DNA from: Andalucia godoyi And28
Lineage: Eukaryota > Protista > Jakobida
Assembly: GCA_009859145.1 (NCBI GenBank)
Contig: VRVR01000027.1
Span: forward strand, 195,974 to 259,973
Length of the DNA stretch: 64,000 bases
Direction of reading: 5' to 3'
Below the pieces are notes generated by a model. The model worked only from the letters and a program-made list of their open reading frames with translations. It made no database searches and was not told where the DNA came from. Shown here piece by piece: positions 4,676 to 49,159 of the stretch (within the stretch, counting starts at the first letter, position 1; each line of letters opens with the position of its first letter). Both the position numbers and the translations under genes were made by a program.

Positions 4676-4778
4676 CGTGAGCATTTTGCGAACAGCAGAT
4701 GGCGTCTTATTTTTTGCTGTCGGTTGGCAAAAGGATCTTGATGTAAGAAATAGTTTTTCTTTTGTTTCTTGATTTTCA

Positions 4779-21130: not shown

Positions 21131-21434
21131 CTGGTTCTTGTTATTCTCGGTTTTTCGATTTTCTCCGAGAATATGCGGAATTGCAGATCTGTCACGGACC
21201 GAACACACTTGTGACCGGGTGGAGCTCCCAAATGGCTCCGAACTTTGTTCGCAAAACTCGTGTATCTCGAACGTGTTTATCCCGGTGCAAGTGCGCGCAC
21301 TTGCTCCTGGTTTTCTCATGCTCTTCATTTCCCCGTGTTCCTCGGAGATTCTCGTCATTTTCCTCCACAGTCAGGGTCTTTTTAAGCCACTTGTTCCCAA
21401 GATTCACATAAAATTAACCCTACACCTCTCCCTG

Positions 21435-23237
21435 ATGAATTCCAACGGCGACATTTGGGATGTTGATGCTGCTGTGCATTCTGTTTTGCACCTCCTTCAA
21501 ACGGATCCGCAGAATGCACGCCTTGCAGCAGTCCCTTTGTGGGTTCGTATCAACCTGCGATTTGTAACTTTGTCATTCTTCCAAATCCCTCAGTTCCTGG
21601 AGGAAGAGTTCGAAATCCCGTGCGCACTGTTCCCTCTGCTGCCCACCTCCCAGTATGCCGAGGTCGCTGACTCCGTGATCTTCTTGCTGCGGCACAGTCC
21701 GCGATACGAAGAACGAGCTTCCGCGTTCTTGGACGATTCCACTTTCCCGGATCTCGAATGGCAGAAAATCGACCCATACATTCCAGCTTACATGCCGGGA
21801 GTGCTGGGAAACGCGAGGTTGCTCGAAATGGTCATGCGCGACCGCCAGTTTCCAACTGCCCACATTCTCTTCTTGCTGAAACAGTCGTTCGAACGCTTTC
21901 TGGAACAGACAACCGCTCTTTTGATCGAGGAATCCGACTGCGGTCTACTCTCTCATTTCCACCACACCCTTTGCAACGCCGTTGTCGAGAGACGCATCAC
22001 AGGAGTGCGCATAGGGCAAATTCTATTCGTTGGGGCAGAAATAATTCTCGCATTGGGCGTTTGCTGTCCTGAACTGTTCAGAGCCAACATACCTTCTTTC
22101 CAAGCAGCCATGCACCGAATGCACTTGCCGCGACCATGGGTGTGGCTGGTGCGTGCGAGCGTACTCGCTCGATCCGACCAAGACCTCCTTCGAGCTGCTG
22201 ACCTCTTGTTGGAGCACCTGTCGACTCGTGGGGTGCGACTCCACTTTCTATTCAACGCTTTCAACATGAATAACGTCTCGTTGGCTCGGTGGATGATCGA
22301 GCACGATCTCATGGACGCAGAGCGAATCTTTGCCACCTCGTCCTTTCCGAATGTCTTGCAAGCAACAATGCCGCCCGATAAGAGGTTCACCACGATAGAG
22401 GCCGCTGCACTGTTGGGCTGTACCCTCGCAAATCCGTTTGTCATCGCTTCGGATGCTCTCCATTTCGCAGCCAACTTGTCGGCACACCTCTTGGAATCCA
22501 ACGACGTGCGGGTTGCGTTCTTCGTCGACAAATGGCTGGATTTCACTCCAACTCCTCGGCTTGATGGGTTGTCTGCTCTCCTTGACGTGACAATAAGTGA
22601 TCTCATTCTCAGCGATGAGGTGGTGGAAAAGTTTGTGTACATCTCCGTTCGGAATGACGACGTTCTCTGACTGCAAGTGCTGGAGAGTGATTTCCATGCA
22701 GACTTGTCGGACCCGAAATATTGGAGTTCCATTTCGAGTTTGAGCATGCTGCAGTTTCTGAAGGAGGAACTTGGCGTGCGGGTGCGATGATCAAGGTGGA
22801 TGAAAGTCCCAGCGGCGCTTCGCAAAAGCATATGAGACGGTGATCAGTCCGTTCGAGCAGACACATACGAGTTGCTGCGTTTGCACATCCGCTCCTCCGT
22901 TCGCCCTCAGCGAATGGCAGCGCACCGTGCCCAGTGGACCCTTCGTGCACGGCTATTGGAGGACACCGACACCGTGGGGGCCGATGTCCCACGAGTCCTT
23001 GCCGCCAATCCTCCAGCATTTCGACATTACTATCGATGGCAAACTTTGCATCATAGCATGGTATTGTTTCTCACGTTCTTGTTGAAGAGGATGGGAAGCC
23101 CAAGTGATCTTGCAGGGGGTACGCACCGTTACCGCACACAAGAAGATGTGGAAAGGGATTTGCAAACTGCAATGGCAGATGCAAAATCGAACAGCAGGAC
23201 GCTCGGTGTTTCCTGTGGTTCAGAGTGCCGAACGTAA
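21435..23237 (+). pseudogene. Paralog of the 28417..30198 protein N/central region, interrupted by three in-frame TGA codons (22668, 22788, 22833)
   Basis: Reading through the TGAs gives DLSDPKYWSSISSLSMLQF...V*SRWMKVPAALRKSI*, which aligns with DFSDPEYWRSISSQEMLRF...VWWPSWMAVPEALRRSIH of the paralog. RPWVWL and LSTRG.R motifs are also shared; no frameshift. Confidence 0.72.
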
Positions 23238-24577: not shown

Positions 24578-25238
24578 TTTTTACATAAACTTTACATAAG
24601 CACAGTCATCTGGGTATCCGTGACCTTCAGCTGCTCCGGTTGGTCAGGAGGTCAGGAACGTCGGACGGAGCGCATCTCGATTTTACATAAGCACAGTCAT
24701 CTGGGTCTCCGCGACCTTCAGCTGCTCTGGTTGCTCAGGAGGTCAGGAACGTCGGACGGAGCGCATCTCGATTTTACATAAGCACAGTCATCCGGGTCTC
24801 CGCGACCCTCAGCTGCTCTGGTTGGTCAGGAGGACCGGCAGGTCGGACGGGGCTGATCTCGATTTTACATACGCCTGGTCATCTGGGTCTCCACGACCTT
24901 CAGCTGCTCTGGTTGGTCAGGAGGACCGGCAGGTCGGACGGAGCTGATCTCGATGTTAGATAAGCACAGTCATCCGGGTCTCCACGACCGTCAGCTGCTC
25001 TGGTTGCTCAGGAGGTCAGGAACGTCGGACGGGGCTGATCTCGATTTTACATACGCCTGGTCATCTGGGTCTCCACGACCGTCAGCTGCTCTGGTTGCTC
25101 AGGAGGTCAGGAACGTCGGACGGAGCGCATCTCGATTTTACATAAGCACAGTCATCCGGGTCTCCACGACCGTCAGCTGCTCCGGTTGGTCAGGAGGACC
25201 GGCAGGTCGGACGGAGCTGATCTCGATGTTAGATAAGC
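24578..25238 (+). repeat. 91-bp tandem array 1 (7 units)
   Basis: Unit starts (CATAAGC-equivalent) at 24595, 24686, 24777, 24868, 24959, 25050, 25141 and 25232, an exact 91-bp period. Confidence 0.97.
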
Positions 25239-25239
25239 C

Positions 25240-26450
25240 TAGTGGTTGCGCTCTTCGTGTTGGAGTGGAAGACGAAGATTTTACCAACCGTTCACTCCTT
25301 GGCATCTGAACATCGCAGCACAGCTCCAACTCTACTGGCGGAAATTCGACATCTGTTCGGAGGAAACACCGAGGGCTTGCGCCAGGGCTGATGCATCCAT
25401 CCTAAGCGTAAATGACGTGATCGTTCATGCCGAGTCGAACGACGCTAGAATTGCATTCTATGAACTCAACGCAGACAACATCAGCAGGTTCGCACACGGA
25501 GGGGTGCAGCGCCAGCAACTCGTGGTATGTATGCAGCCGATCCTGTGTTGGTTCGTGAAATGCTTGGCCCGTGGATATAGAGACTACATCGTGTTCGAAT
25601 CCACCAATCCGACACATGCCCTTCTAATAAGGTGTCGACTATCAGAAGACAACGCACCAATAAGGCAGACAATGGGTGGCTCCGATTCTGTCGGACCTGT
25701 GCCCGCTACCAACTGGTCTCCCAAGGAATTCCACCTGCATCTAGGACCAAGGACCGTCCGATCTGGGTTCCAAGGGGATCACATGGGAGGGCGCCTGGAA
25801 GCATCGAACCCCAACATGACCGACCCACAGGTTTCACGCACTTTCTACTGGACTTCCTGATAGGAAACTCGATCTCGGATACCAATTTCTCCGAAAGTTG
25901 AAGGAGTCGTTCTGCGGATATTCGCAATCAATTCCAAGTGTTCTTGTTCCTGAGATGCGATCCGATGTTTCCTTGAGGACAAGAGGCTACCAGCGAATTC
26001 AGCTTCATTCAGCTTCACGGTCAACCAGCTTAGTAAGGCCATGCCCGTTCGGTGGAAATGTGCCAATCTCAGAAAATCGTCGACGTATAACGAGATTTGA
26101 AGCCCAAGCGAGCGGCTGTGGTCTTTCAGTGGCATCCGAAGCTTCGTGCTGACGTCAGATGTCCAACTCAGCCTGAAGAAGAGTATCTGAAATATGTACT
26201 GCTGCTGTCCCTCCCGAATGCCGCGCAGTGCGGAGAACTGATCGCTCAGGGAAGCCACACGATATCTGTATGTGAGATCTACCGAGAAGAGCTGTTCTCG
26301 CTCTGGGTCAGGTGAACCAACGAGGATCAATCCTCTTATCTGATGCGCGAAGTTTGGAGCAGGAGCATGATGCACGGCCCGCAGGCCGTCAACCAGGCGC
26401 CCCTCTCACCTTGGAAATCAGGACAACCGGACACCGTAGGAGGCTATCTA
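25240..26450 (-). mobile_element. Degenerate DIRS-like (tyrosine-recombinase retrotransposon) reverse transcriptase plus RNase H remnant
   Basis: RLVDGLRAVH...LFSVDL...QYIFQILFFRLSWTSDVSTKL...RSLGLQISLYVDDFL matches the DIRS RT layout (RLIxDLRxLN, SxDL, YQFxxLPFGL, FTK, YxDD). Downstream TLRMDASALAQALG and frameshifted VELEL resemble RNase H motifs; stops and frameshifts are present. Confidence 0.7.
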
Positions 26451-33716: not shown

Positions 33717-35864
33717 ACGAAGACCGTAACTACTCTCAGTAGCATTCTGGATTCCAAACACACACAGGTCGTGCGAACTGATTGTATGCCTTCGTCCACA
33801 GTTCCAAAACCTGCATCGGCCTTGTGTCTGATTATCACGTGGGCTGATCCAGTTGTTTTTGATGCTCCTCGCTTACTCCTTTGCTGTCCTGAACATGGAG
33901 GCGAAGTGGAAAGAAAGTTTCTGTGATTTTAACAGGCCGCCCATTTCCTTCCATCTTCCCAAGTCATGTTTAGTTCCGGAGAATGACATCAACCAGCTAG
34001 GGAACCTTGAGAAGTAGATAGACCCATTTTGCTTCCTTCTATTTTGCATGAAGGCTTTTACGGTACATAGTGCAGAACAGTTGGTTAGCAACAACAGTCG
34101 TCTGTCAACGCGCAGTCGTAGGAACAGGGGGCTTCAAATTCATTTTGTTCGCAAAGCAGAAGTCTGCAGCGGTACGACGTGACTGGCGCGGATTTGCCCC
34201 CACGTGTTGTTCCGAAAGAGATTTTGTTTCCAAGTTGAACGTCTAGATTTCATTTTCAGGTTTTCTGTTTCTTCTTTTTTAAGGAAGTTTTTTTCACTGG
34301 TTTGATCTGCTCATGTCGACCAACCTTGATATTGCGCGACTTTCGCCTATCCTGGTTTCTTTCCATTTTAAACAAAGGAAATTCTTTTAGCTTACAGGAG
34401 AACGCTCTTCTCAATGTGCTCTGCGACCCATTACAAAGCAACACACGAATGCTAAAAGAAATTAGAAGAAGTCGTGAAGCAATCGTACTTCTGTACTTGG
34501 ATTACAGAGCCTGATTCAAGCTGTTTTGGAGAAAGGAGTGGTTGAGGGGGTTTCAAGGAGTACCTCCAATCCACCTTGTTCTTTGATTTCTTTAGCTGCA
34601 TCTGGTCAGACACTTTCTCAGGATCATCGAACAGCACTTGATCAGAGTCATCGCATTCTGGCATCTAGACAGCGCTATCTGCACGCACCTGTCTCTTTAA
34701 GATCGGAGGACCCTTCTGACAGTATTCTAGACAGGTTATCCGAATACAGCAGCAGTGAGATGTATGGATACCGTTAGGGCGAATCGAACGACGTTCTTAT
34801 GCAGATTGTGGGATTCCTGTAGTTCAACAGAACCGAGATTCTCCGAAAACTGTCGAGTTTGATGCGAAATCAAGGCTCTAAGGGTGCTTTAGACATGATA
34901 GCAGATTGGCAGGGGTGCCTTCAGCCTATTCCCGCCGAGATTTCGAGTTCTGGTGCGCCGTCAAAGAATCCATCTTTCAAAGCGGAGTCGTCAGGGATCT
35001 TCAGATGAGAACAGCGTGAATGAAACTCCAGATTGAAGCACACATAACGGAAAACGAGAATCTGCATGGCCGTGCAGTTACGATGAAAGTGAGGACGAAG
35101 CAGCACATTTTCATTCCTTGCTCCACTTAGTTTGTGAGTTGGGATATCCTCTGCCCACAAGAAATCTACCTTCAGCTCTACCGATGAATATGAAAAGCAT
35201 TCTTTCCCCCATCATACAGCGAAAGTCGTAAGGATGTTGTTTTAGTAACAAACCCGCACCGAAGAACAATATGTGCACAGCGACCGGGAGCAAATTCTCA
35301 AAAGAGAAAAGATGAGTATTGGAAGACGACGTGCCAAAAACAATAACGCCGACCAATAGAATAATCTGCCGACTGTGCCCGATCCTGCGGTACGAGCAAT
35401 TCCTGCCACGGTGGAAACCTGCATTGCTTTTGCATCGTTTCCACTGCATTTAGCAACGTTATTCAGCGACCCCCATTTCTTTTACTGTCAGAGCATGCAT
35501 GCGCCGGTATCCTCAGTCGCTCCGTTAAGGAGCTCGCCCTTTGCTATCCTAATGACTTCTTTGAAGAGTCTTGCGGCATACATGCAACGTTAAGCCGCAT
35601 ACCGTTCTGCTACAGCTATGTCTGTTGCTCGTTTCTTGATGATCCGAACTCCATACAGACCACCTACATCGCTGCTCGAATGTCGATGACCGTGGTAGTC
35701 AACACCTTGAATACGCAATTACGACAAAAACACACGATTAATGAGACGGACGAGAGGACCTCCATACTCATAGAGCAGCCGTCATTGCAACCATCGTGGG
35801 CAACGAAATCAATCAACGGATTGAAAATGAAACAAAGCGGTGGCGAACGTCAATCTCATTTTTT

Positions 35865-37012
35865 CATAAGCCTGGTCGTCGTGGTCTCCGTCATCTTCAG
35901 TCGCTCCAGCTGTTCAGGAGGACCGGCAGGTCGGACGGGTGTGATCTCGATTTTACATAAGCATGGTCATCTGGGTCTCCATGACCTTCAGTCACTCAGG
36001 CTGTTCAGGAGGACCGGAAGGTCGGACGGAGCTGATTTCGATTTTACATAAGCATGGTCATCTGGGTCTGTGTGACCTTCAGTCGCTCCAGCTGTTCAGG
36101 AGGACCGGCAGGTCGGACGGGTGTGATCTCGATTTTACATAAGCTTTATATAAGCATGGTCATCTGGGTATTCGTCATCTTCAGCTACTCTGGCTGGTCA
36201 GGAGGACCGGCAGGTCGGACGGAGCTGATTTCGATTTTACATAAGCATGGTCATCTGGGTATTCGTCATCTTCAGCTACTCTGGCTGGTCAGGAGGACCG
36301 GCAGGTCGGACGGGTGTGATCTCGATTTTACATAAGCTTTACATAAGCTTGGTCATCTGGGTCTGTGTGACCTTCAGTCACTCAGGCTGTTCAGGAGGAC
36401 CGGAAGGTCGGACGGAGGGAGTATCGATGTTACATAAGCATGGTCATCTGGGTCTGTGTGACCTTCAGTCACTCAGGCTGTTCAGGAGGACCGGAAGGTC
36501 GGACGGGTGTGATCTCGATTTTACATAAGCTTTATATAAGCATGGTCATCTGGGTCTGTGTGACCTTCAGTCACTCAGGCTGTTCAGGAGGACCGGCAGG
36601 TCGGACGGGTGTGATCTCGATTTTACATAAGCTTTATATAAGCATGGTCATCTGGGTCTGTGTGACCTTCAGCTGCTCTGGCTGGTCAGGAGGACCGGCA
36701 GGTCGGACGGAGCTGATTTCGATTTTACATAAGCATGGTCATCTGGGTCTGTGTGACCTTCAGTCACTCAGGCTGTTCAGGAGGACCGGAAGGTCGGACG
36801 GAGCTGATTTCGATTTTACATAAGCTTGGTCATCGTGGTCTCCATGACCTTCAGTCACTCAGGCTGTTCAGGAGGACCGGAAGGTCGGACGGAGCTGATT
36901 TCGATTTTACATAAGCTTGGTCATCTGGGTCTCCATGAGCTTCAGTCACTCAGGCTGTTCAGGAGGACCGGAAGGTCGGCGACGGAGGTGATCTCGATTT
37001 TACATAAGCATG
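35865..37012 (+). repeat. 91-bp tandem array 2 (12 units; four carry an 11-bp duplication, last unit +2 bp)
   Basis: Unit starts 35865, 35956, 36047, 36138(+11), 36240, 36331(+11), 36433, 36524(+11), 36626(+11), 36728, 36819, 36910 and 37003; same family and orientation as array 1. Confidence 0.97.
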
Positions 37013-37355
37013 ATCGTTGCTGTCGTCAGTGTCTTAGCAAAACCGTGTGCGTGATGGTTGGAGAAAACCATCGTTCTATGGGAATACCGACGTCGTTTTT
37101 AATTCTGTGGCTCGCGGTTCGCCCTGAAGGTCCTTGTGTTTCTCCGCAATAAAGGATCATGTGCTGCACCGTTGTAAGGCAATAATTCAAGCGACAGTCA
37201 CGCACAACACCGGACAAAGTTTCGATTCGAAAAGTTGGAAGGAAAGCCTTTTCCCACCATTTTTCCATCGCTAAAATCACGCATTTCTAGACAATCAAAA
37301 TGTATTAGGACGACAGCGATTTTCGTCCCAAACGTTTCAGTGGATCATTGTTAGA

Positions 37356-37826
37356 ATGTCGTCTGTTCGAAACTTCTTTGTTGCCGGATACACAGGTACC
37401 GGTGTTCTATTCCGTACTCAGAATGAGGAATCTAAAGAAATGCCATGCATCAACATCCCCTCCTTCGTGAAACGCAGCTGGGACAACATTGTGAATAATG
37501 GCATCATTGATCGACGCCTTCAGACCCGTGGCGTGTGGATCGCAAGAGAGAAACTGCAGCATGGCACAATCAACGACGCGGACCGGCACCACGAAGACTT
37601 CTGGTCGTGGAGAGAAATTATCGATGCAATTGAAGAAGCAGAAGACCCCGACTGCTTTCCTTCAGAGGATGATCTCGACGGCCTTGACGATCTAAATGAT
37701 GGCGAAGATGACGTGGTTGATGAAGAGGAAGATGAAGAGGAAGAGGAAGAAGAAGAAGAAGAAGAAAAAGGATCCTGTCCCTCACCGAAGCGCATTCGGT
37801 TGACGGAAGATCGTCTCGAAAGGTAA
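37356..37826 (+). CDS. Hypothetical protein with long acidic (D/E) tail and basic terminal motif, 156 aa
   Basis: ATG-initiated; poly-Glu tract followed by PSPKRIR (NLS-like). Confidence 0.55.
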   Translation: MSSVRNFFVAGYTGTGVLFRTQNEESKEMPCINIPSFVKRSWDNIVNNGIIDRRLQTRGVWIAREKLQHGTINDADRHHEDFWSWREIIDAIEEAEDPDCFPSEDDLDGLDDLNDGEDDVVDEEEDEEEEEEEEEEEKGSCPSPKRIRLTEDRLER

Positions 37827-38409
37827 ACAACTTTATCATAATCATTCCTTCTATCATGGTGGGTGCGTGCGAACCGACTGCTTCTGTCCTTCATGTAGGT
37901 ATGATGTTTTCGCTACATAAGAATTTGGCGATCTCAGAAAGTGAGAGAGATACCAATCATCATGGATCACGTCGTTAGCGGTCAGAGGCGCAAACCTACG
38001 GGAGATAAGACAGCGGATGAGACCAAAGGACCAAATTAACGGATGCAGGAATGCTCGACCGGCCACAGAACCTCAGAGGGCGTGAAGAACAGAAGACCCT
38101 TCACCAGACATTCTGACAGGAGTGCAGTCTAGACCTCTCGTCGTCTTCAAGAAGGCCACACACCCAGGGGTTTCTATGTCCAGCAGAGACCTTTCCGTAC
38201 GGTCCCAGAAAGGAGGTCCCCGTTCTGGAGGAAAAGGACGACCTCATAACCTACATACAAAACAAATCGACAGCTCGAAGCAAATGCCTTTCATCGACTC
38301 AAAAATGCAATATCACTCACAGTGCCCCTCCACTCCTGCCAGACTGAATGCAAATGAGAAGAACGTGAAGAATTCTAAAGAAACGACAAATGGGCGAGTT
38401 GATTTGAAC

Positions 38410-39501
38410 ATGAAATCCTGGAAGGACCAGCTTCCAGAAGCCCTCCGTACCCCGCATGAAGACCAGCGAAACAAACGGAGAACGAAGACAACGGATTTCG
38501 ATCTCAAGACCGTGTCGACCTGGACATCTGTCCTCGGATACGTCCGCGTCTCGACGGACATGCAGGAGGCATCGATGGAAAGCCAGACAGCGGCTATCCG
38601 GAAATACGCTGCCGACAGTCTACAGCTTCCAGTGCGTCGCATATACACAGACGAAGGCATCTCAGGAGCGAAAGACGAAACACATCGCCCAGGGCTCGCA
38701 CAGCTCCTTCGGTCCATGCGAAAAGGAGAGATTATTGTCGTCACGGAAGTGAGTCGCCTTGCTCGGAGCATGGACATCGCTGTTCCCCTCCTGCGACAAA
38801 TAGCCCAAGCCGGCTGTCGGTTCATAGAACTTCGAACGAACCTTGACACCTTGGATCCGGCCTCAAAATCATTCTTGATGTTTCATGCGACTTTGGCAGA
38901 AAACGAACGGGAGATGATACGACAACGAGTTAAACGAGGAATGGAACACTGTCGATCCAAAGGATTCGTAATGAGTTGTCCGCCTTACGGGTATAGAGTC
39001 AACCCAGAAACAAGAACACTAGTGCATGACACTGCGACGCGACCCGTCGTCGAACGGATCATCGAAATGCGACGAGAAGGATTCCAGTACGAAAAAATCG
39101 CAGATGCTCTTCCTCTGATGACTGATCTTGGACCTCCAAAGGCACCGCGCGGAGGAGACTACTGGCAACCTCAGACCGTGCGAAACATTTGTGAAAGAGA
39201 ACTGGGAAAGGAACTAGCCGATTCTTGCGGTACGCATACGTGCGCGGATGTTCACGACAGTGACGAAGATGAAAACAGCGTTCAACCAGCTCAGACGGAA
39301 AGCAAAGAGATTAAAAATCCTGATGTCGAGGAATCCGGTACCGAGCTGACGTGCAGCAGGAAAGCAGACCTTGCGCGAAAACCTCTCCCTCTTCTGCGAA
39401 TTCTCGTGCGGAGAAAGAGAATCGAAATTGGGATTTCCGAGGAAGAAGTTGGACTGCTCTCTGCAGACGATTGTGTCGTCCTGTTGACAGAAACTGTATG
39501 A
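38410..39501 (+). CDS. Serine recombinase (resolvase catalytic domain plus recombinase-type DNA-binding extension), about 363 aa; frame open from 38122
   Basis: LGYVRVST (catalytic Ser at 38551), YTDEGISGA, RPGLAQLL, VVTEVSRLARS, AENEREMIRQRVKRG, PPYGY and WQPQTVRNI. Confidence 0.9.
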   Translation: MKSWKDQLPEALRTPHEDQRNKRRTKTTDFDLKTVSTWTSVLGYVRVSTDMQEASMESQTAAIRKYAADSLQLPVRRIYTDEGISGAKDETHRPGLAQLLRSMRKGEIIVVTEVSRLARSMDIAVPLLRQIAQAGCRFIELRTNLDTLDPASKSFLMFHATLAENEREMIRQRVKRGMEHCRSKGFVMSCPPYGYRVNPETRTLVHDTATRPVVERIIEMRREGFQYEKIADALPLMTDLGPPKAPRGGDYWQPQTVRNICERELGKELADSCGTHTCADVHDSDEDENSVQPAQTESKEIKNPDVEESGTELTCSRKADLARKPLPLLRILVRRKRIEIGISEEEVGLLSADDCVVLLTETV

Positions 39502-40240
39502 AAAAAGACGGAGGCAAAAGAGAGAAGTTCGAGTGTTTAGGAGGACATCGATGCAGCAAAGGATAGAGGGAGTGTTCGGAATGTAAATAAGGCCGTGGAC
39601 GCATGAGATACTGATTGAGAGAAGCGCAAAAGGACCCCAGCCGCATCATGCGCTCCAAAGGATATTGCAGAAGACGCAAAATTTCCTGCAAAGATAGCGT
39701 CCGGCTGAAGTCACGGCCATAGAGGCATGGAAACGCCTTAGAGAGACAAAACAGAAAGACGAAAATGACGACGAAGCAGATCTCAAACAAGAGCAGACGT
39801 ACTTTGCGTGGAAAGAAAAGCAGAAACATTATTGCACGATCAGCATCAGAGCAACAGTGAAAAATGAGGTCGAAACAAAACCTTGGAAGCATATCGTTGC
39901 GAATCGACAATCCAGAAAACGACGATCGGCGTCTTGAGTTACGTGACGACACTCCAGCAATATTTCGCGATGAGCTGAACTAAACAGTCTCACGAACATT
40001 CGACAAAAGACAAAAGATAGAAAAGACGATGCATGATTCGGTCAAACGGCTATACGAAGAAAGCACGGCATCATCAATCTGTCCGTCAACCGTAATTACA
40101 CCGCCGCATTTCGGCAGAGCCAAACAGGCGGGAAAAGCAACAGACGGAAATCTCTGCACACCCCCAAACGTACTTCGCTCTGGGACATCGTGCAAGCGAT
40201 TAATAAGGTTGGAGAAGGAGAAGGTCTTTCAATCCAGACC

Positions 40241-40703
40241 TCCCCAGATGTCCCCATATCCCCAGATCAGGACACCCAGAAACAATGAGCAAAGGTTGTG
40301 GAACGAGAGAACCTTCACACCCAGATGTTCCCATATCCCCATATCCCCAGATCCCCAGATCAGGACACCCAGAAACAATGAGCAAAGGTTGTGGAACGAG
40401 AGAACCTTCACACCCAGATGTTCCCATATCCCCAGATGTTCCCATGTCCCCATATCCCCAGATCCCCAGATCAGGACACCCAGAAACAATGAGCAAAGGT
40501 TGTGGAACGAGAGAACCTTCACACCCAGATGTTCCCATATCCCCAGATGTTCCCATATCCCCATATCCCCATATCCCCAGATCAGGACACCCAGAAACAA
40601 TGAGCAAAGGTTGTGGAACGAGAGAACCTTCACACCCAGATGTTCCCATATCCCCATATCCCCATATCCCCAGATCAGGACACCCAGAAACAATGAGCAA
40701 AGG
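40241..40703. repeat. Composite minisatellite, 93/111-bp units built from a constant core plus variable numbers of CCCCATAT/CCCCAGAT micro-units
   Basis: Core GATCAGGACACCCAGAAACAATGAGCAAAGG at 40265, 40358, 40469, 40580 and 40673. Confidence 0.95.
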
Positions 40704-40798
40704 CGTTTCTAAAGAGCATGGCCATAGGAAACTGAACACATGTGCGTCGAGCCGAGCACAACTGGAAATTGCGTGGTGCAGCTGCACCTCAGTCCTGC

Positions 40799-40951
40799 TT
40801 GGTTTGGTTTGGCTTGGCCCGGTTCGGTTTGGTTCAGTCCTGTTTGGCTTGATTCTGTTAGGTTCAATCATGTCCTGTTTCCTCAGTTCGGTCCTTTTCG
40901 CTTCGATCCGCTCCTGTCCACCAGGCACTGCTCGGTCCGGTTCGGTCCGGT
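40799..40951. repeat. Degenerate pentamer microsatellite (GGTTY/CGGTY)
   Basis: ttggtttggtttggcttggcccggttcggtttggttc...cggtccggttcggtccggtc visible directly. Confidence 0.8.
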
Positions 40952-41110
40952 CATGTTCTGTGAGTTGTAGTCGTATTCAACTGCGTTCGGGTTAATGGAA
41001 GCAGAGCGATCGCACTTCGTTTACAGATTAATTTCAGTTTGTTTATTGCATTTGCACAGTCTTCATTTCGAGGATTCCGGAGGACGCGGGTAAGATGTGG
41101 AAAGACGAAG

Positions 41111-41842
41111 TCACCATCTAGGCAGACGTACTTTCTTTCGGATGTTCTCTTGCAATTTCAGCCGTTGTTGTTGTTCTTCAAATTCTCTTCGCCAATTAGG
41201 GCCCTTTTTGCCGTCCAAATCCAAATCCCAATTCACACCAGGGTTGAAAAAAATCCGTTTTTCGTTGTCTGGTATTGTTGACGGGTCGATCTCTTCACAA
41301 ACCCTCTTTCGAGACCGGAGCGAGCTTGTCAGTTGCACGTCCTTACCTGGTGTCGATGATACGGCTTCATCTCCTGATGTAGAGGACATAATTTCCAGAT
41401 CGTCCTCGGCATTTTGCTCCATTTCCATCCATGAATGCGAGAGTTCGTCTGCAGCTTGCACGTCCTCGCCTGTTATCGGCGTTGCAGTTTCTTCCTCCGA
41501 GCCTGTGCTGTCATGTGACGAGGATGAAGAGCCCGAGGAAGGAAAGTTTGTGGATCCCTGATTGCGCCTTTCTTCGCGGCACTGTTCTACAATAGCATTC
41601 CGCTCCTTCTTGTTTCGGCACGTACATGTACGAAGCAGTCGCATTTTCACCTCATCAACTCCGCCAGCCATTTGAAATATGTCATATGGAGGAGAAAGCT
41701 GCAAATCCTCGATTTTGGACATTTGTTTCCATTCCCGACGATATTCTGCCTTTCTCTGAGAAAGCGAGGACGCCGTGCTACCAATGAACCAAGACCCTTT
41801 CCATTCAATGATGAACACCTCGAGCACCGTAGCTTCCGACAT
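41111..41842 (-). CDS. Divergent GIY-YIG-like domain (N-terminal about 95 aa) plus Ser/acidic tail, 243 aa
   Basis: EVFIIEWKGSWFIGSTASSLSQR...LLRTCTCRNKKERNAI aligns with the neighbouring KIYKLV...FFIGSTTCRTLAER...LLEDYPCETKDQLNAR. Confidence 0.55.
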   Translation of the reverse strand: MSEATVLEVFIIEWKGSWFIGSTASSLSQRKAEYRREWKQMSKIEDLQLSPPYDIFQMAGGVDEVKMRLLRTCTCRNKKERNAIVEQCREERRNQGSTNFPSSGSSSSSHDSTGSEEETATPITGEDVQAADELSHSWMEMEQNAEDDLEIMSSTSGDEAVSSTPGKDVQLTSSLRSRKRVCEEIDPSTIPDNEKRIFFNPGVNWDLDLDGKKGPNWRREFEEQQQRLKLQENIRKKVRLPRW

Positions 41843-42685
41843 GGTCTTCTTTTATGTTGTTTACTCTCATTTTTCCGGTCCGTCAATTTGAATTCTTGTA
41901 GGCTCATCCATTTCCTCTAGACCCCTCCGTCATTTTGAGCGCTTGGAGATTCGTGAATCAAAGAGTGTGTTCTGTAATCCACAGTGCCAAAAGATCAGAT
42001 AGTCGGATAGCCGTCGTTGTGTTCTGCAAGATGTGATCATGCTTCTCCTCAGCGTGCGCAAATCGTTTCTGTGCTCCAATGAACCATACGGAACACAGTC
42101 AAGATCGCCCCATTCTTTCGTTTGAGCGCAATCAAGAGAGTCGTCAGCACTCAGCAGTCCCAAATTAGGACGCCATGCAAACAAACATGCTTTCTTGTGC
42201 TCGCGTGGGACTGGTGACCGTGGTGATCGCCTCGGACCCCGGTCACCAATGGAAAAAATTCTGCTTGCATATTCTCTTTTTTTGGTTTGCCCTTCCTTTA
42301 ATCCTCTTGTTAAAACCCAAATTTGCCAAAAGTCCGGTGAAATCAACGATCGTCCCAGAAAACATGGCCTTGTTTTGCTTTGACACGGATTCTGATCGTA
42401 CGCATGCCGACCGCGTGTTGATTGCACCCTTTTGTTCTTCCGCCTGTCATGAAACGCCCCCAGAACTTCGAATGAGACTAGACTTGAGACCAGCACTTTT
42501 TAATCTGAAACACACACGCATAAAAAAGCTCAGAGCACGCCCTCCGCGTATGTCCATCGACACCGAGAATGCCCCGGTTCTTGCATCTCAACATCACTGA
42601 GCAACACGCCTGCAGGACTGACCACGCCGCACCGGATTCACAAAACAAAAAAAAGGGGATTTCACGGTTAAACGCGGGTTAACAT

Positions 42686-43006
42686 TTAAATACTGGGATT
42701 ACCGAGCTCTTTGATCTGGAAAGACACTGGATTTTCGATCCACAATTGTTTTCTTGCATTGAGTTGGTCTTTGGTTTCACAAGGGTAATCTTCGAGAAGA
42801 AAGATATGGCAGTTATCTGGTCCGTGCTGGTCAATGAATTCGGTCGATTTGCATGTTGACCCCTTTCCTTCCTTCCACATTTTGTACATAAATTTGTGAT
42901 GTGACAGTCTTTCAGCCAATGTCCGACAAGTTGTTGATCCAATGAAGAATTGGTCGGGCTTGTTTGCCACCAGTTTGTATATCTTGCTTTGTTGATAGTT
43001 CACCAT
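42686..43006 (-). CDS. GIY-YIG endonuclease-family protein (MVNY..KIY type), 106 aa
   Basis: MVNYQQSKIYKLVANKPDQFFIGSTTCRTLAERLSHH...LLEDYPCETKDQLNARKQLWIEN; true ATG at 43006. The position of the usual catalytic Glu (ARE) reads ARK. Confidence 0.8.
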   Translation of the reverse strand: MVNYQQSKIYKLVANKPDQFFIGSTTCRTLAERLSHHKFMYKMWKEGKGSTCKSTEFIDQHGPDNCHIFLLEDYPCETKDQLNARKQLWIENPVSFQIKELGNPSI

Positions 43007-43386
43007 CTCGTTTCGTCTCAGAAATAAGATACCTTTTTGTATTGTTTTTGGTTTTGTAGAATAGAGCAGGAACCACACCCGTTCTGAAACAACTCAGCAG
43101 TTGCACCATTCGTAAGGTTTAGTCACTTCAAACCTCAATCCCTTAATGCTCGACGATTCCCGGAGAGTATGGAAAGTTGAAAACTTGTGCAACAATTAAG
43201 ATCGAAATGCTCAGCACGTAGAACGCGAGTCATGTCGGGGAAAGAAGCCTCTCGTTTGTAGCGATCCAAATTTAGAGAAACAGGACAGTTGGGGTCCCGA
43301 AAGGCGACCTGTTTGGAGGAACAGATGTCATGATCCGTATCAATAGTGACTCAAGCACACACACCCCTTGTCAAAGAGAACGTGCT

Positions 43387-43884
43387 TTCGAATTTACATA
43401 AGCATGGTCGTCTGGGTCTGCATGACCTTCAGCTGCTCCGGTCGGTCAGGAGGACCGGCAGGTCGGCGACGAAGCGCATCTCGATTTTACATAAGCACGG
43501 TCGTCTGGGTCTGCATGACCTTCAGTCACTCAGGCTGTTCAGCAGGACCGGACGTCGGCGACGAAGCGCATCTCGATTTTACATAAGCACGGTCGTCTGG
43601 GTCTGCATGACCTTCAGTCACTCAGGCTGTTCAGGAGGACGGGACGTCGGCGACGGAGTGCATCTCGATTTTACATAAGCTTTACATAAGCATGGTCGTC
43701 TGGGTCTGCATGACCTTCAGCTGCTCCGGTCGGTCAGGAGGACCGGCAGGTCGGACGGGTGTGATCTCGATTTTACATAAGCTTTACATAAGCATGGTCG
43801 TCGTGGTCTCCATGACCTTCAGTCGCTCCGGTAATTCAGCAGGACCGGAAGGTCGGACGGAGATGATCTCGATTTTACGTAAGA
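43387..43884 (+). repeat. 91-bp tandem array 3 (5 units of 91-93 bp; two 11-bp duplications)
   Basis: Unit starts 43397, 43490, 43582, 43674(+11), 43776(+11) and 43878. Confidence 0.97.
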
Positions 43885-44029
43885 CTGGTGTTTGTGCTCT
43901 GCTGCCTCGCTGAGGTCTTTCAGGAAAGCAGCGATCGTTGAGCTGACAAGACTTGGGATCTTTGAATTGTTTACGTTTTGAATGCAGGGTTTATTGTGCA
44001 AGATCTTGGTTACGTTTCTGCAATTTTTT

Positions 44030-44309
44030 TTGGATTATCGATCGATGCCTGTTTTCTTGCATTCAGCTGGACCCTGGTTTCTCCAGGTGTTCTTCAAGGA
44101 GAATGATACGGCAATTATCGGGTTCGTACTGGTCAATGAATTCGATTTATTTGTATTTTAGCTTCTTCTCTTGTTTCCATGCTTTATACGCAAGTTTGTG
44201 CTGTGCTTGCGTTTCGGCTGGTGTCCAACGTGTTATTGATCCAATGAAGATTTGATCGGGCTGGTTGGCCTCCAATTTTGTGTATCTTGCCTTTTTTTCA
44301 ATTCACCAT
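44030..44309 (-). pseudogene. Decayed duplicate of the 42686..43006 GIY-YIG gene
   Basis: MVN*KKGKIHK, frameshift, EANQPDQIFIGSIT...AYKAWKQ...K*IEFIDQYEPDNCRIILLEE, frameshift, QLNARKQ. Shares upstream GTCACTTCAAAC with the intact copy. Confidence 0.82.
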
Positions 44310-44634
44310 TCGTTTCCTGTTATCTTCTGTTCTTGTTTCGGAGAAAGAAGAACGATGCAACAACGATAAAAAGCCAAAAAGAATTGTGCTATAATGTACG
44401 TCTTGTCACTTCAAACTTTTAAACGGACCGATCGAAGCTTCGAAAAGAAATTCGCTCTGTCGTCGACGTACAAGCAGATGTGAACGACAGTCGTGCAGGT
44501 ATGATCAGACGCGGACTGAGATTTCCTGGAGAATCGAATTCGTTCCCAGAGAGCATTTTTAAAGACGGTCAAGCAAAAGCAAACGGTTCAGTTGTAAGGT
44601 TTTACTCGATTCGAGTGATCCACTTCTTAAGAAA

Positions 44635-46386
44635 ATGAACGGTATAGGTGCGCAACAGAACAGTGGTCAACTCCAACCTGCAGCGATCGGCCCGAAGTCA
44701 CCAGTCTTCCGTACGACAGGAGGCATAGGAAGAAGCGTAAACCCGGAAGCATCAGAACGCAGACATACTCCCGATCCAGATGCGCAGTCTTGCATTCGCG
44801 CCCCATACCCAGATGTATGGAGTCAGCGCATAGACAAGACGCAATTGCGAGGAGCACAGCGAGAAGCAATTGCAGCAGTTCATTTGCATTTTCACCAGCT
44901 GAAGATCGAGGATGATCTGAACGTCATTCGAACTTTCGTGGAAAAGGAACATCTTCTGAAAAACAAGCTTGCGGAAAACGACAGGGAGAGAGATGATCGC
45001 CTCGAAACGGAACTGAGAGGAGTGCAGAGGCAGACAAGAATTCGCGCAGAGCGCAACAAACCAGCATTGATTCACCTTCCAATGGGGATGGGTAAAACAG
45101 GGATCGCAATGACTCTTCCGTTCGGTATGGTGAATGGACGAGTGCTCTTCGTCGCTCCAAACCGAGAAATTGCTCGCGAAGCTGTGAGGAATGCCGCATG
45201 GAAGTCAGCGAAGTGCTTCATCCGAAACATTAGAGTCCTTTCCACGGATAGTCGACATCCCTCGATTGGAGTGATTGTGAGCGCGAACGGGAATCCAGAG
45301 ACCATGCGTGAATTGGCAAGCCTGGAGGTCGTTGCTGCAGACCCGAGTTGTTTAAATCAACTTCGTGATTGTGATTTCATAATTACAACACGACATCGCT
45401 TGCAGAATACGAGAGGATCACTTCAACAGCTTCCGCGAGACTACTTCGATCTCATCATCGTGGATGAAGCGCACCACGCCACCTCTTGCACTTATCGCCA
45501 GATCCGCAAGCACTTCGTCACTGCAAGGCTCGTGTACATGACCGGAACACCGCATCGCGCAGACGGAACGCAGTTGGACGCGACACTCATTTACCGCTGT
45601 CCACGAAAGCAAGCATTTGAAGAAAGGGCCTGGAAACAACTCGTCGTGGAAACCATCGAAGTATCCGAGCTGATATTTCTTGCATCAAAGCCATGTGAAA
45701 AACCTATTGTGTTCAACTCTTGTGAAAAAGTCCGACGAGCAGGATACTTGAAATGGGTTCGAAACAGTGTAGCACGATCGCGAGCAACCATGGAATGGAC
45801 CGTGGAACGTGTACTGCAGTTATTGAGAGAGAAGAACAGACCGGGGACGTCGATTCACCACCAGGCGATTCTGCAAGCCATGGATTTGCAACACGCAATC
45901 CAGCTTCAAGAAATCTTTAATTCTCATGCAGAGAACGGCGATGAGCGATTCAAAGCAATTGCAATCGGATCTAGAAATATTCCATGCTACCCGATGCAAC
46001 TAAGATCTTCCAATGACTTGCGAAACTTCCGAGAAGGGGGATATGACGCTGTTGTGCACGTGGGAACCCTAGGAGAAGGCTTTGATTTGAAAAGTCTCTC
46101 CATCTGTGGCATCTGTCGGCCGTTCGCATCACAAGCACCTTTGGACCAGCTTATTGGCAGAGTGATCCGAGCATTTTCTCCAGATACCCAAGGACTCGAT
46201 CCTAGCATAGACAATGTGGCTCATATTGTTGTCCACGATGCTCTTGGACTGGGGGCCATGATACGCGCTTTCGTTACAGAGGACCGCTTGCAACTGAGAT
46301 TTCGAGGAAAACGAGGTCTTGCGAGAGGAACGCCTCAAGTGAGTCAGTCGATTTCGAACAGGCACGTGCGGACGCACCGTTTGTGA
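44635..46386 (+). CDS. Superfamily 2 helicase/ATPase, DEAH type, type III restriction Res-subunit-like, 583 aa
   Basis: Q-motif-like LRGAQREA, IHLPMGMGKTG (I), LFVAPN (Ia), LIIVDEAHH (II), MTGTPHR (III), VGTLGEGFD (V), QLIGRVIR (VI). Confidence 0.88.
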   Translation: MNGIGAQQNSGQLQPAAIGPKSPVFRTTGGIGRSVNPEASERRHTPDPDAQSCIRAPYPDVWSQRIDKTQLRGAQREAIAAVHLHFHQLKIEDDLNVIRTFVEKEHLLKNKLAENDRERDDRLETELRGVQRQTRIRAERNKPALIHLPMGMGKTGIAMTLPFGMVNGRVLFVAPNREIAREAVRNAAWKSAKCFIRNIRVLSTDSRHPSIGVIVSANGNPETMRELASLEVVAADPSCLNQLRDCDFIITTRHRLQNTRGSLQQLPRDYFDLIIVDEAHHATSCTYRQIRKHFVTARLVYMTGTPHRADGTQLDATLIYRCPRKQAFEERAWKQLVVETIEVSELIFLASKPCEKPIVFNSCEKVRRAGYLKWVRNSVARSRATMEWTVERVLQLLREKNRPGTSIHHQAILQAMDLQHAIQLQEIFNSHAENGDERFKAIAIGSRNIPCYPMQLRSSNDLRNFREGGYDAVVHVGTLGEGFDLKSLSICGICRPFASQAPLDQLIGRVIRAFSPDTQGLDPSIDNVAHIVVHDALGLGAMIRAFVTEDRLQLRFRGKRGLARGTPQVSQSISNRHVRTHRL

Positions 46387-46583
46387 CTCTGCGAAAACCC
46401 TGTTGTCCGTCAAAACAGGGGGGTATGCGCCTGGTAGGCCGGTACGGATTGGTGTCATTCTTTTGTTCTGCAGAAACAAAACCAGAACCAAAAAAAAATT
46501 CTTTCCTTTTTCTTTTCTTCTCTTTTTTTCCCCCCTTCTTATTTTCTCCTTTCTCCTGTTTTTACTATTTAAACCCGCGAACA

Positions 46584-47606
46584 ATGACGATCGACGATTA
46601 TTCACTTCCGCTGTGGAACCTTGAGAATGATGCGATAGATAGCCCCGGTCTGTTTGACAGCTTTGGCAGTCTTTTCGCAGAAAAGGAGGTATCCGCAGAC
46701 GCTCCTGTTACGCAGACCCCCAATCAGGGGTTGGACAATGTTGATCCAACGGTACCACATTCGATGACAGAGCCTGTGGATACTGGATACGACGTCAGTG
46801 ATTCTGATGTCACGAGCGACCTGTCCGTGGATGCAGTTTCGACAAACTGTGAATCTGTCGGGACACCGGATCAGATTTCTGAGCATGATGTTGCTCGTCT
46901 CGTCTCGACGTCAAGTATCCCAGCTGCATCTTGGCCACAGTCTGTATGCGGTGCGATGGGTGAGACGCTCGGACATACTGTGAATGGTGTTCCATTGACA
47001 GTGTGCGTCTCATGGCAACATGAATCTGCTTTTGACCTCAGCGCTGGATATCTTCCAGTCCTGGGAAGTAAGCGAGAAGTGCTTGAAGGAAGGGACGGTC
47101 GTGTGTCTGTATTCATTGCCTCACCGTGGTTCTCCTCCCCGGTCACCGCTTTCTTGACTCTCGAGGATGTTAAATCAGGATCACTGGTTGATTTTGAGAC
47201 TGGCGAGTTTTGTAGCAACCTCTCCGCGATGCCTTTATCTACTGGCTACAATCCATGGACCAGATTGATTGAGCTGTATGGCTCTCATCACTTCTGCTTC
47301 AAACACGCCACTGTTCGAGAGAAACGGGATCTTCGACTCGTGGTCTCCATCTTTGCGGAAGGGACATTCTTTTCAGTGAAGAGCCAACCCTTCCGCGTTC
47401 TGTCCCGCAAACACCGATGCGTGGAATCAGAACAGGCAGACTTGATCTGCCACAAGGTTTTCTTTTGCATCATCGATGCTCTGTGCTCGCTTCTTTTCAT
47501 AATCCTCATTCTTCACGTAATATTCGCGTGGAGGATTGTGGAAGCCGGGTACGCCCAACTGTCGAATTTATTATGGACAGCTTCTCATCTTGAATTTAAT
47601 ATGTAA
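46584..47606 (+). CDS. Hypothetical protein with acidic N-terminus and possible Ig-fold DNA-binding domain; 3' end may be spliced
   Basis: ATG at 46584 follows a long pyrimidine tract; LRLVVSIF...VKSQPFRVLSRK beta-rich end. The T-rich segment after AAG|GT at 47457 may be an intron. Confidence 0.55.
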   Translation: MTIDDYSLPLWNLENDAIDSPGLFDSFGSLFAEKEVSADAPVTQTPNQGLDNVDPTVPHSMTEPVDTGYDVSDSDVTSDLSVDAVSTNCESVGTPDQISEHDVARLVSTSSIPAASWPQSVCGAMGETLGHTVNGVPLTVCVSWQHESAFDLSAGYLPVLGSKREVLEGRDGRVSVFIASPWFSSPVTAFLTLEDVKSGSLVDFETGEFCSNLSAMPLSTGYNPWTRLIELYGSHHFCFKHATVREKRDLRLVVSIFAEGTFFSVKSQPFRVLSRKHRCVESEQADLICHKVFFCIIDALCSLLFIILILHVIFAWRIVEAGYAQLSNLLWTASHLEFNM

Positions 47607-48148
47607 ATAGAGGACTCAAATTCACAAATGAGAATCATTTACACGTAGAATTGGGTTTGGAGCAACGCAGATGATTGATATGCTCGAGGATATTCACAAG
47701 CGATAAATAGGAAATAAATCTGAAAGAACTACAAATCGAAGATATGCTCCACGTGATACGTTTCCATGACGAGAGAGACAACATTTCTTTCGAGTTTCCT
47801 TTGGGCAGAGAATCGTGTTTTTTCTTGGGAAGATCTGCTCAGACAGCTTTCCTTCATCTGCTCGTACCTGCACGACTTTCAAATGACTGACAAAATGGGC
47901 AAACGCTTGTGGAAAGACTGCTCGCATCTCCTTGACTCTGCAGTCTACTTCTGCACGCATCTGCACGACTTCACTTTCTTTCAAAAGAAGTCCGAATGTG
48001 GTGGCGCTTGCCGCGGTCTTGCGTAACATTTATAAATCAGATGTGCAGCATGTTTTCGCAATCCCTTCTTTCTCTTTTTTCTTTTCGTTTACTCAAAACC
48101 CCTCTTCCTTCCTTCTTCCATCCCAACCCAACGAAAACAACAGAAGCC

Positions 48149-49159
48149 ATGAGCTCCAACAATTCACCTGTGTCCAGCAACAAGCCTCGTGATCAGTCCA
48201 CCGTTCGTGATGAGACGATTCTCCCTCATTCCAAGCCGGCGGCGCACGATTCCAAGCGTTCTCCCCTGCAGTCGGTTTCCAAGATGTCTCCGAAGTCACC
48301 GACGGCTCCTGTCAATCGTCCTCGCAAAACAATCTCTGATGAAGAGATCGAGGGCGAGCTTTCAGCTGGCGTGCGTGACAAGGCGCCCATGAACGCGAAG
48401 CGCCGCGTTGACGACGATGATATGCCAACCTTGGAGCTCGATGACGCGCAGGAAATCCCGAAGCCTCGTCCGCAGACGTCCTTGCCCAAGACTCCTGTCA
48501 AGCGCCCTCGCGACGTGACATCGGACGAAGATGCCGAGAACAAGCCTTCGTCTGGAATGCGTGGCAAAGCGCCGATGAAAGCGAAGCGCCGCGCTGACGA
48601 TGATGATGCCTTAGCCTCCGGAACGGACGACGATCAGGAGGACCCGGAGCCTCTTCCGCAGAAGCGCTTGAAGGATGGCAATCGCTTTGCCACCACCTCC
48701 GACCATGTGGCCTCTTCGTCATTGTCCAAGGCTTCTGTGAAGCAGGCTTGCGAACGGATGTCAGATGCCAAGGTAGCGGAAAAATTGTCTCAGCTCAAGG
48801 CGTCATCAGCGGTCCTGCGTCGCAAAGTAAGCGAGAACGCGTCTTCTGACGAAGACGGAGGCGAAGGCTCTGAATCAGATGCGCACGATGAAGACGTGGA
48901 TGACAACCGTGGCGCAGGATCTCTTCAGGGAACGACTGGTGCCGCTGACGAACATGCCGCCTCGAAGCATCAGGAAGCAAAGAAGGCCGCGCAGTCCTCC
49001 AAGAAGCGGAAGACTCCCGTCCAACGCAAGAAGCCCTTCTGGATCAAGTTTACTGTGTCAAATGATGACGAGCTGAACGGCATTTACCGTCTTGTAGCGT
49101 CTTTTCTCACGACGCTGAAAACTCACAAGGTCGAGCGCAGTCCTCGACCCAAGGCATAG
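48149..49159 (+). CDS. Low-complexity, largely disordered protein with an internal duplication, about 336 aa
   Basis: SAGVRDKAPMNAKRRVDDDD versus SSGMRGKAPMKAKRRADDDD; short folded-looking C-terminus FWIKFTVSNDDELNGIYRLV. Confidence 0.7.
   Translation: MSSNNSPVSSNKPRDQSTVRDETILPHSKPAAHDSKRSPLQSVSKMSPKSPTAPVNRPRKTISDEEIEGELSAGVRDKAPMNAKRRVDDDDMPTLELDDAQEIPKPRPQTSLPKTPVKRPRDVTSDEDAENKPSSGMRGKAPMKAKRRADDDDALASGTDDDQEDPEPLPQKRLKDGNRFATTSDHVASSSLSKASVKQACERMSDAKVAEKLSQLKASSAVLRRKVSENASSDEDGGEGSESDAHDEDVDDNRGAGSLQGTTGAADEHAASKHQEAKKAAQSSKKRKTPVQRKKPFWIKFTVSNDDELNGIYRLVASFLTTLKTHKVERSPRPKA

Follow-up and report, generated by a model that had tools for sequence, protein, structure and literature searches.

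The 6.4-kb body at positions 37013-43392 of a 64,000-nt stretch of Andalucia godoyi And28 DNA (contig VRVR01000027.1, positions 195,974 to 259,973; hereafter, the window) encodes a serine recombinase and is bracketed by two tandem arrays, A2 and A3, that are built on the same strand from one repeat unit. Our preferred, if still tentative, explanation is that this body is an integrative element that used a unit-like site to recombine with the array, and the recombinase that it encodes is the likely catalyst. A first-pass annotation made from the sequence had already placed the segment between arrays 2 and 3, with direct copies of one word at 36999-37012 and 43393-43406, and had listed a serine recombinase, an acidic protein, and a minisatellite among its contents; each of these descriptions was borne out, and the corresponding features are collected in Table 1.

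Array units and junctions

The arrays were called with Tandem Repeats Finder (TRF) together with repeat finding over the 64-kb window. One 91/102-nt unit gives rise to three arrays, A1, A2, and A3, all on the same strand and within 20 kb. The unit starts with the word TTTACATAAGC, which is doubled in seven units to give the length of 102 nt. The first 14 nt of the unit itself read TTTACATAAGCATG, and because this 14-mer is the unit start, it recurs, exactly or nearly so, at every unit boundary. When one mismatch was allowed, the 14-nt word was matched 17 times in the whole window in comparison to 0 times expected from shuffles. It forms an exact (14/14) direct repeat at the two edges of the bracket, and the A2 and A3 edges are complementary in phase with a 14-nt overlap.

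The last unit of A2 (A2_12, positions 36906-36998) contains a CG insertion at 36975-36984, and the first three units of A3 contain the same insertion. The inserted form, GTCGGCGACG, occurs at 36975, 43462, 43554, and 43646 only, and the 20 other units all read GTCGGACGG, in agreement with the earlier statement that the 2-bp insertion is confined to these four units. Recurrent slippage is unlikely to have produced this pattern because the inserted CG does not repeat the adjoining nucleotides in tandem. Once the body is removed, the CG units form a contiguous block running from A2_12 into A3_1 to A3_3. The probability that CG units would occupy both inner edges by chance is 1/36 (∼0.03) if the blocks are kept together and 1/120 (0.008) if the units are placed freely. 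A second state, the A in C-A-TG, is likewise continuous from A2_11 to A3_5.

The edges of the arrays differ in how well the 14-nt word is preserved. The word is perfect at both inner edges and at 21 of the 28 internal positions, whereas none of the four outer edges has a perfect copy (one to two mismatches each); the degenerate forms are TTTACATAAAC and GTTAGATAAGCCTAG at the leading and terminal ends of A1, TTTTCATAAGC at the start of A2, and the terminal word of A3. The first-pass annotation had cautioned that all of the arrays end at this word. The ends do share the same phase, but the word itself is exact only where the arrays face the 6.4-kb body. The units at the inner edges are also ordinary members of the family, with A2_12 and A3_1 being 97% and 100% identical to their nearest units, in contrast to the outermost A2_1 and A3_5, which are the most diverged (86%). 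The core of A2_12 is closest to those of A2_2 and A2_11, and the cores of A3_1 and A3_4 are identical.

The likeness of the flanks to the unit was scored by in-register identity counts, which are more sensitive than strict local alignment; local alignments of the flanks against the units under strict scoring were not significant. On the body side of the junctions, 8 of the 11 nt left of 43393 (P = 0.008) and 10 of the 20 nt right of 37012 (P = 0.07) agree with the unit. Since likeness to the unit extends beyond both inner-edge words, it is unlikely that unrelated DNA was cleanly inserted with a 14-bp duplication; flanks of this kind are better matched by a site homologous to the array than by foreign DNA that has no relation to it. 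When the two ends of the body are joined, the resulting sequence, GTGCTTTCGAA-TTTACATAAGCATG-ATCGT, equals an array unit junction at 26 of 30 positions. The junction data fit three readings, namely, a unit-like site carried by the element, a short array carried by the element, and two natural array ends. The natural ends (25228-25262, 35850-35875, and 43874-43905) fade outward, with degenerate edge words and flanks that are 60 to 65% unit-like over ∼20 nt.

Table 1. Positions, in the window, of the arrays, the junctions, and the genes and repeats in and next to the 6.4-kb body
Feature	Positions	Strand	Description
A1 array	24580..25242	+	7 units, 91 nt each; serves for comparison
A2 array	35861..37012	+	12 units (91, 102, or 93 nt) and terminal word TTTACATAAGCATG
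Left junction	36999..37017	+	exact 14-nt word, then ATCGT (4/5 unit-like)
Acidic ORF (open reading frame)	37356..37826	+	156 aa; Glu/Asp run from a 12-nt repeat; no known family
Serine recombinase	38305..39501	+	398 aa from ATG; ORF open from 38122 (398-459 codons)
Minisatellite	40251..40703		periods 93, 111, and 18; CCCAGATC/CCCATATC sub-repeats
Remote GIY-like ORF	41111..41842	-	243 aa; N-terminal 70 aa GIY-YIG-like, rest Ser/Glu-rich
GIY-YIG-like ORF	42686..43006	-	106 aa; type common in giant viruses; truncated after catalytic core
Right junction	43382..43406	+	GTGCTTTCGAA (8/11 identical to unit tail end), then exact 14-nt word
A3 array	43393..43884	+	5 units (93, 92, 92, 102, and 102 nt) and degenerate terminal word TTTACGTAAGA
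GIY-like pseudogene paralog	44031..44316	-	75% DNA and 51% protein identity to the 106-aa gene; in-frame stops, frameshifts

Further features of the array family were recorded. In A2, the 91- and 102-nt units partly alternate (TRF period 193), as do two tail types. Each unit holds four GGTC/GACC motifs resembling half-sites in + - - + orientation, which are candidate protein-binding sites. Single-strand folding of the units gave no convincing structure and no strong palindrome (z from -0.3 to -2.1). The terminal word of A1 (GTTAGATAAGCCTAG) and the first word of A2 (TTTTCATAAGCCTGG) have in common a rare 'GCCT' state that is otherwise present only in A1_4 and A1_6, a hint from the sequence that A1 and A2 could be old neighbors too. 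The repeat unit had no match in a scan of IMG/VR, and a scan of metagenomes with the unit junction returned eight matches, each limited to 19 to 23 nt around the pattern. Some candidate arguments were set aside. A proposed pair of reciprocal chimeras (A2_12 with a B core and P tail, A3_4 with a P core and B tail) was weakened by the A2-like tail of A2_12, indel aside, and by mosaic units being the rule. A 'GAACGT' common to the sequences upstream of array starts and a model of double insertion at the same word for A1 and A2 were both dropped, since flank-to-flank alignments were not significant and the right flank of A1 is itself unit-like.

The serine recombinase

The protein comprises a catalytic domain (residues ∼75-215), helix E, a putative, partial 'recombinase domain' reaching to ∼307, a disordered acidic linker, and a helical C-terminal module of 50 aa; the N-terminal 74 residues are predicted to be disordered. 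It matched Pfam Resolvase (PF00239) with an E value of 1.2e-35 over profile positions 2-143 of 145 and the PHROG 95 integrase profile with an E value of 1e-50, in the latter case over positions 39-309 of 651 only. Among solved structures compared by sequence, Gin was the best match (E = 8e-17) and gamma-delta resolvase was also matched (E = 4e-10). Residues 75-307 are confidently predicted in an AlphaFold model that drew on 20 sequences, and within them residues 230-307 form strands and helices with predicted local distance difference test scores (pLDDT) of 85 to 93. The best Foldseek matches of the model were the SPbeta SprA (9dxd) and Bxb1 (9iu2) integrases (E values of 2e-12 to 3e-10, ∼246 columns); an IS607-like catalytic domain was matched far more weakly (E = 4e-3). 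PF07508 gave no match at E ≤ 0.01, but the region still aligns with relatives that carry this domain (PYGY...).

All residues that are invariant across 20 aligned relatives are kept in the A. godoyi protein (Tyr79, Arg81, Ser83, Gln94, Asp116, Ser120, Arg128, Arg151, and Arg154), and the motifs YVRVST, Q, D..SG, RPG, and SRLAR are present. The Ser in 'LSRLAR', which is Asp in resolvases, is common to 9 of 19 aligned relatives. Judged by its sequence, the recombinase is intact and its catalytic residues are conserved. It is an entry in EukProt. The nearest relatives (35% identity) are encoded on prokaryotic mobile-element contigs, where they adjoin an excisionase-like HTH_17 gene and a Prim-Pol gene; no comparable tandem repeats were present beside a prokaryotic relative. 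The scan of IMG/VR returned no close relatives, and the best 80 matches (identity ≤39%) were located on contigs of 2 to 192 kb, none of which is labeled as a giant-virus bin (GVMAG).

The protein resembles the large serine recombinases (SPbeta SprA, Bxb1, phiC31, and TP901-1) in its catalytic domain, in helix E, and in a region that probably corresponds to the beginning of the 'recombinase domain', and elements with large serine integrases likewise consist of integrated DNA with a short shared core directly repeated at both ends. In contrast to those systems, the protein has no zinc-ribbon/coiled-coil region and no recognizable directionality factor accompanies it, the host is a eukaryotic nuclear genome, and the putative target is a tandem-array unit, not a unique gene; identity to known relatives is ≤38%. 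Although its fold is closest to that of the large serine integrases, we do not file the recombinase among them because it lacks the zinc-ribbon/coiled-coil feature that defines them. The small serine recombinases (gamma-delta/Tn3 resolvase and Hin/Gin) recombine two like sites and, when these are direct repeats, produce a deletion and a circle, as the flanking words would allow here. The A. godoyi protein departs from them in having a C-terminal DNA-binding part that seems to be of the recombinase-domain type instead of a 40-aa helix-turn-helix, in its length of 398 aa with extra N- and C-terminal regions, and in the absence of any visible accessory-site architecture.

In eukaryotes and giant viruses, the known serine-recombinase mobile DNA is that of the IS607-family serine transposases (PMC3673617, PMC3627910, PMC6188088). 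They offer a parallel as serine-recombinase mobile DNA in eukaryote-associated genomes that has neither inverted repeats nor target duplications. In IS607 TnpA, a (MerR-like) DNA-binding domain precedes the catalytic domain, whereas here the catalytic domain comes first, and because of this reversed domain order the recombinase is not IS607-like. The candidate element is also 6.4 kb long, not ∼2 kb, and no TnpB/Fanzor family, a frequent companion of IS607-family transposases, turned up in the window ORFs that were scanned. A literature search on serine-recombinase elements in eukaryotes returned IS607 cases only. We are aware of no serine-recombinase mobile DNA other than IS607 that has been documented for eukaryotes and their giant viruses, nor of any integrase-like serine-recombinase element described in a eukaryotic nuclear genome.

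Proposed integration into the array and alternative explanations

According to the integration explanation, the body is or was an element encoding its own serine recombinase that would have entered a pre-existing array of 91-nt units. On entry, unit-like sequence of the element would have recombined with an array unit junction, with no cut-and-paste step and no target duplication. The element may have carried one ∼30-nt site, with strand exchange by the recombinase inside the shared 14-nt word, or it may have carried a short array of its own made of CG-type units and have entered in Campbell style, by homologous recombination or by the action of the recombinase. These two versions fit equally well, and both would leave the body between two directly oriented stretches of array. 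If run between the flanking words, the same reaction would release a circle and restore a single array, so that excision is possible in principle. The anatomy, the conserved catalytic residues of the recombinase, and the junction sequences are observed directly, whereas we infer that the array was continuous in the past, that the recombinase acts on the word, and that the element was ever mobile. In favor of this scenario, an intact recombinase lies inside the bracket and the arrays are all in one orientation. An internal recombinase and direct core repeats, the combination by which site-specific elements are recognized, are both present, with the repeat being the unit's own first 14 nt. A more specific proposal is that an element with a non-IS607, integrase-like serine recombinase resides in a eukaryotic nuclear genome (or in a virus that became endogenous there), for which element the 91-nt unit junction would be the attachment site, the array a multi-copy landing pad, and circle release possible; we regard this as rather unlikely.

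Several observations weigh against integration. The natural ends of the arrays look like the junctions, with 13 of 20 nt after the last word of A1 (P = 0.0015), 12 of 20 nt after that of A3 (P = 0.008), and 7 of the 11 nt before the first word of A2 (P = 0.04) being unit-like. Terminal inverted repeats of the body amounted to chance-level pairs only, and dyad symmetry at the reconstructed attachment sites (attP/attB) was within background. Scans with Rfam and for tRNAs found nothing, and there is no tRNA target. The zinc-ribbon/coiled-coil region (PF13408), which governs the choice of att sites and the direction in known integrases, had no Pfam match, and PHROG 95 positions 310-651 were unmatched. 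The GC content, GC3, and codon usage and adaptation of the body genes are within the range of their neighbors. A search for further copies, as had been proposed at the outset, was negative: the protein-search matches included no second recombinase, the next match (35%) being from another organism, and no other fragments of the 6.4-kb body were found in the window. No empty site and no further array-bearing contig of the organism came up in the collections that were searched, and exact-protein contig look-ups with the recombinase, the neighboring helicase, and a topoisomerase II paralog returned no record.

The arrays themselves add to these difficulties. Whole-unit similarity shows no gradient toward the junction (rho = -0.08, permutation P = 0.32), and the tail of A2_12, indel aside, is nearer to A2-type than to A3 tails. 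All three arrays are mosaics; ∼14 variant patterns are common to A2 and A3 at scattered positions, and variants shared among A2, A3, and A1 include the T3 tail in A3_4, the doubled word, GTCGTCGTGG in A2_1 and A3_5, and A1-type tails in A3_1 and A3_2. With so many scattered patterns shared between A2 and A3, the CG indel is a pick made after the fact, and one rare character alone ties A2 to A3. Because only one genome copy is available, an integrated element and neighboring arrays that exchanged a variant are indistinguishable. The earlier suggestion that one array was split by an insertion is thus backed by the position of the indel, the perfect inner words, and the undiverged inner units and is opposed by the missing gradient and the scattered variants; similarly, the candidate integrated element has its recombinase and exact repeats in its favor, and native composition, a single-copy recombinase, and flanks that resemble natural ends against it.

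Many of the same observations are what would be seen if A1, A2, and A3 were independent members of a dispersed repeat family, each with its own fading ends, separated by ordinary virus-like, ORFan-rich DNA that holds relic mobile genes, with the CG variant having spread over 6.4 kb by gene conversion or unequal exchange. We consider this a serious possibility, if a somewhat doubtful one; such a family would be comparable to a subtelomeric satellite or to the homologous regions (hrs) that large DNA viruses carry. The hrs of baculoviruses and other large DNA viruses are dispersed arrays of one repeat family that act as hot spots of recombination and of cassette gain and loss. The resemblance lies in the several dispersed arrays of one family; strong palindromes or folds are absent from the present units, and the viral nature of the region is inferred from gene content only. 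Three arrays within 20 kb, inner and outer ends that are all in the same phase and fade into unit-like sequence, variants shared at scattered positions, the lack of a similarity gradient, native composition, and a single-copy recombinase all suit independent arrays, as do a paralog of the GIY-YIG-like gene beyond A3 and surroundings full of family-less ORFs with a multi-copy topoisomerase II cassette. Independent arrays would require chance to explain the CG block on both inner edges (P ∼0.03), and they leave both inner words perfect although the four other edges are degenerate, the inner units undiverged unlike A2_1 and A3_5, and the only recombinase gene that was found exactly within the bracket.

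The array could also have been split without the encoded recombinase, by break repair, by template switching at the 14-nt word, by viral or episomal capture, or by a segmental duplication that copied part of A2 and the GIY gene, in which case the recombinase would be a passenger or domesticated. This route shares all of the split-array signals with integration and would accommodate GIY paralogs on both sides of A3, junctions with no recognizable serine-recombinase site architecture, and a single-copy recombinase with GC content and codon usage like those of its neighbors. We nonetheless judge it improbable: no larger duplicated block is visible, the homology between the 106-aa gene and 44031-44316 ending at the gene plus ∼110 nt upstream; the order of unit lengths in A3 is not a copy of the A2 end; and unit-like sequence on the element side of both junctions would be unexpected for captured foreign DNA. 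A literal reading of the exact 14-nt direct repeats at both junctions would be that of a cut-and-paste transposon with a 14-bp target-site duplication. We find this most improbable, since the ORFs scanned include no transposase of a duplication-making type, terminal inverted repeats are absent, the junction similarity is degraded but longer than 14 nt, and the 14-mer is the unit start that recurs at every unit. To our knowledge, serine recombinases make no target duplication, which also counts against a cut-and-paste origin.

Other contents of the segment, surroundings, and significance

Of the two GIY-YIG homologs that the first-pass annotation had placed in the segment, the 42686-43006 ORF belongs to a GIY-YIG-like family and the 41111-41842 ORF is related only remotely, over its first 70 residues. 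The former has no Pfam match itself. A phmmer search identified a family with 6335 representatives, and PF01541 was matched by 21 of 31 scanned sequences (30 relatives and the 106-aa ORF itself). The family is represented by at least 231 loci in IMG/VR, giant-virus bins included. The window copy aligns over its whole length with the stand-alone GIY-YIG proteins of giant-virus type (the 'NYQxGKIYKI...YIGST' family), at 38 to 45% identity to 30 aligned relatives and up to 52% over phmmer-matched stretches. It keeps KIY, FIG, Arg, and His but, unlike the family, has Lys in place of a Glu that is conserved in ≥90% of members and lacks both the 'CVNK' Asn and the C-terminal Cys/His part; it is a GIY-YIG homolog by descent but probably an inactive relic. 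The paralog outside the bracket, noted earlier as a caveat and confirmed here, is a pseudogene in which Arg-Lys again replaces Arg-Glu. For the 41111-41842 ORF, the likeness to the family is remote (hhalign 87%, E = 4e-6; BLASTP E = 0.014), the conserved His and Glu positions of the family are changed, and no Pfam or PHROG match was obtained. The GIY-YIG-like genes look like decayed cargo of giant-virus type and are probably outside the mechanism.

A word-indexed protein search with the 106-aa ORF gave a single match, on an 8.9-kb contig from Logan SRR21620650. The relative encoded there is 51% identical and full-length (180 aa), with the catalytic Glu and the Cys/His tail; the contig, which also has a DUF5754 gene and two large family-less ORFs, is probably from a giant virus or a related source. 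Elsewhere in the body, the acidic ORF has a GC1>GC2 pattern that fits coding sequence. All of the minisatellite periods are divisible by three, and several frames are open across the two strands; a repeat protein (ORF 40029-40712) may be encoded here, or the sequence may be noncoding. A search of phage records with the segment yielded no match.

The A. godoyi genome is compact (20 Mb) and nearly intron-free, and its authors set aside subtelomeric scaffolds 'primarily of transposon/viral-like sequences', which they mention only in passing (PMC7050145). Long, uninterrupted ORFs in the window encode a topoisomerase II, two protein kinases, a ZIP transporter, and two P-type ATPases, whereas no Pfam family was matched by most of the ORFs from 9 to 53 kb. 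The abundance of such family-less ORFs and the multi-copy topoisomerase II cassette give the region as a whole a repeat- and virus-like character. On the basis of the topoisomerase II, kinase, and P-type ATPase genes and the many family-less ORFs, we had considered the window to be a giant virus; after the topoisomerase II and EukProt results, this was replaced by nuclear DNA with virus-like content. The topoisomerase II gene is located in a sharply bounded 5.2-kb block (16664-21855) that recurs with 83% DNA identity at the very end of VRVR01000066.1; that contig end contains no array, and the cassette is all that it has in common with the window. The protein has at least five A. godoyi paralogs in EukProt (89 to 90% identity), no HATPase_c Pfam match, and a nearest relative outside Andalucia at 42% identity, on a metagenome contig. 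The contigs of its metagenome relatives have that gene alone in common with the window. The block looks like a multi-copy cassette that is possibly virus-derived or subtelomeric.

A metal-transport cluster (230-8765) is composed of a Ca-type P-type ATPase (230-3397, minus strand), a heavy-metal P-type ATPase with HMA (4779-7706, plus strand), and a ZIP zinc transporter (7938-8765, minus strand). At 57425-61899, a protein kinase is fused to TPR_12/TPR_10 repeats and is followed by a separate TPR ORF; the repeats derive from a 252-nt (84-aa) tandem array at 59804-60961 with 4.6 copies and 86% matches. Directly to the right of the GIY pseudogene, the stretch at 44635-47606 contains a ResIII/DEAD helicase ORF (583 aa; PHROG 16 'DNA helicase') that overlaps by 4 nt a 407-aa open frame with no Pfam or PHROG family, and this stretch may be part of the same virus-like region. 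Two 123-nt copies of 75% identity, 186 nt apart (48299-48607), are found within a family-less 387-aa ORF (47996-49159).

The locus presents an integrase-like serine recombinase that keeps the invariant residues of its relatives in a jakobid nuclear genome, and the flanking arrays could be its recombination sites. If active, the system would add one kind to the eukaryotic mobile-DNA repertoire, offer a natural case of a tandem array as an integration target, and provide a compact recombinase (398 aa, with no zinc-ribbon) with a short, directly testable site. If the landing-pad proposal is true, this would be the first such element in a eukaryote, as far as we know and could find in the literature. 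If instead the arrays are independent, the locus would show how repeat-array mosaics can mimic the signatures of insertion, and it would document virus-like, ORFan-rich DNA, GIY-YIG relics of giant-virus type, and multi-copy topoisomerase II cassettes in Andalucia godoyi.

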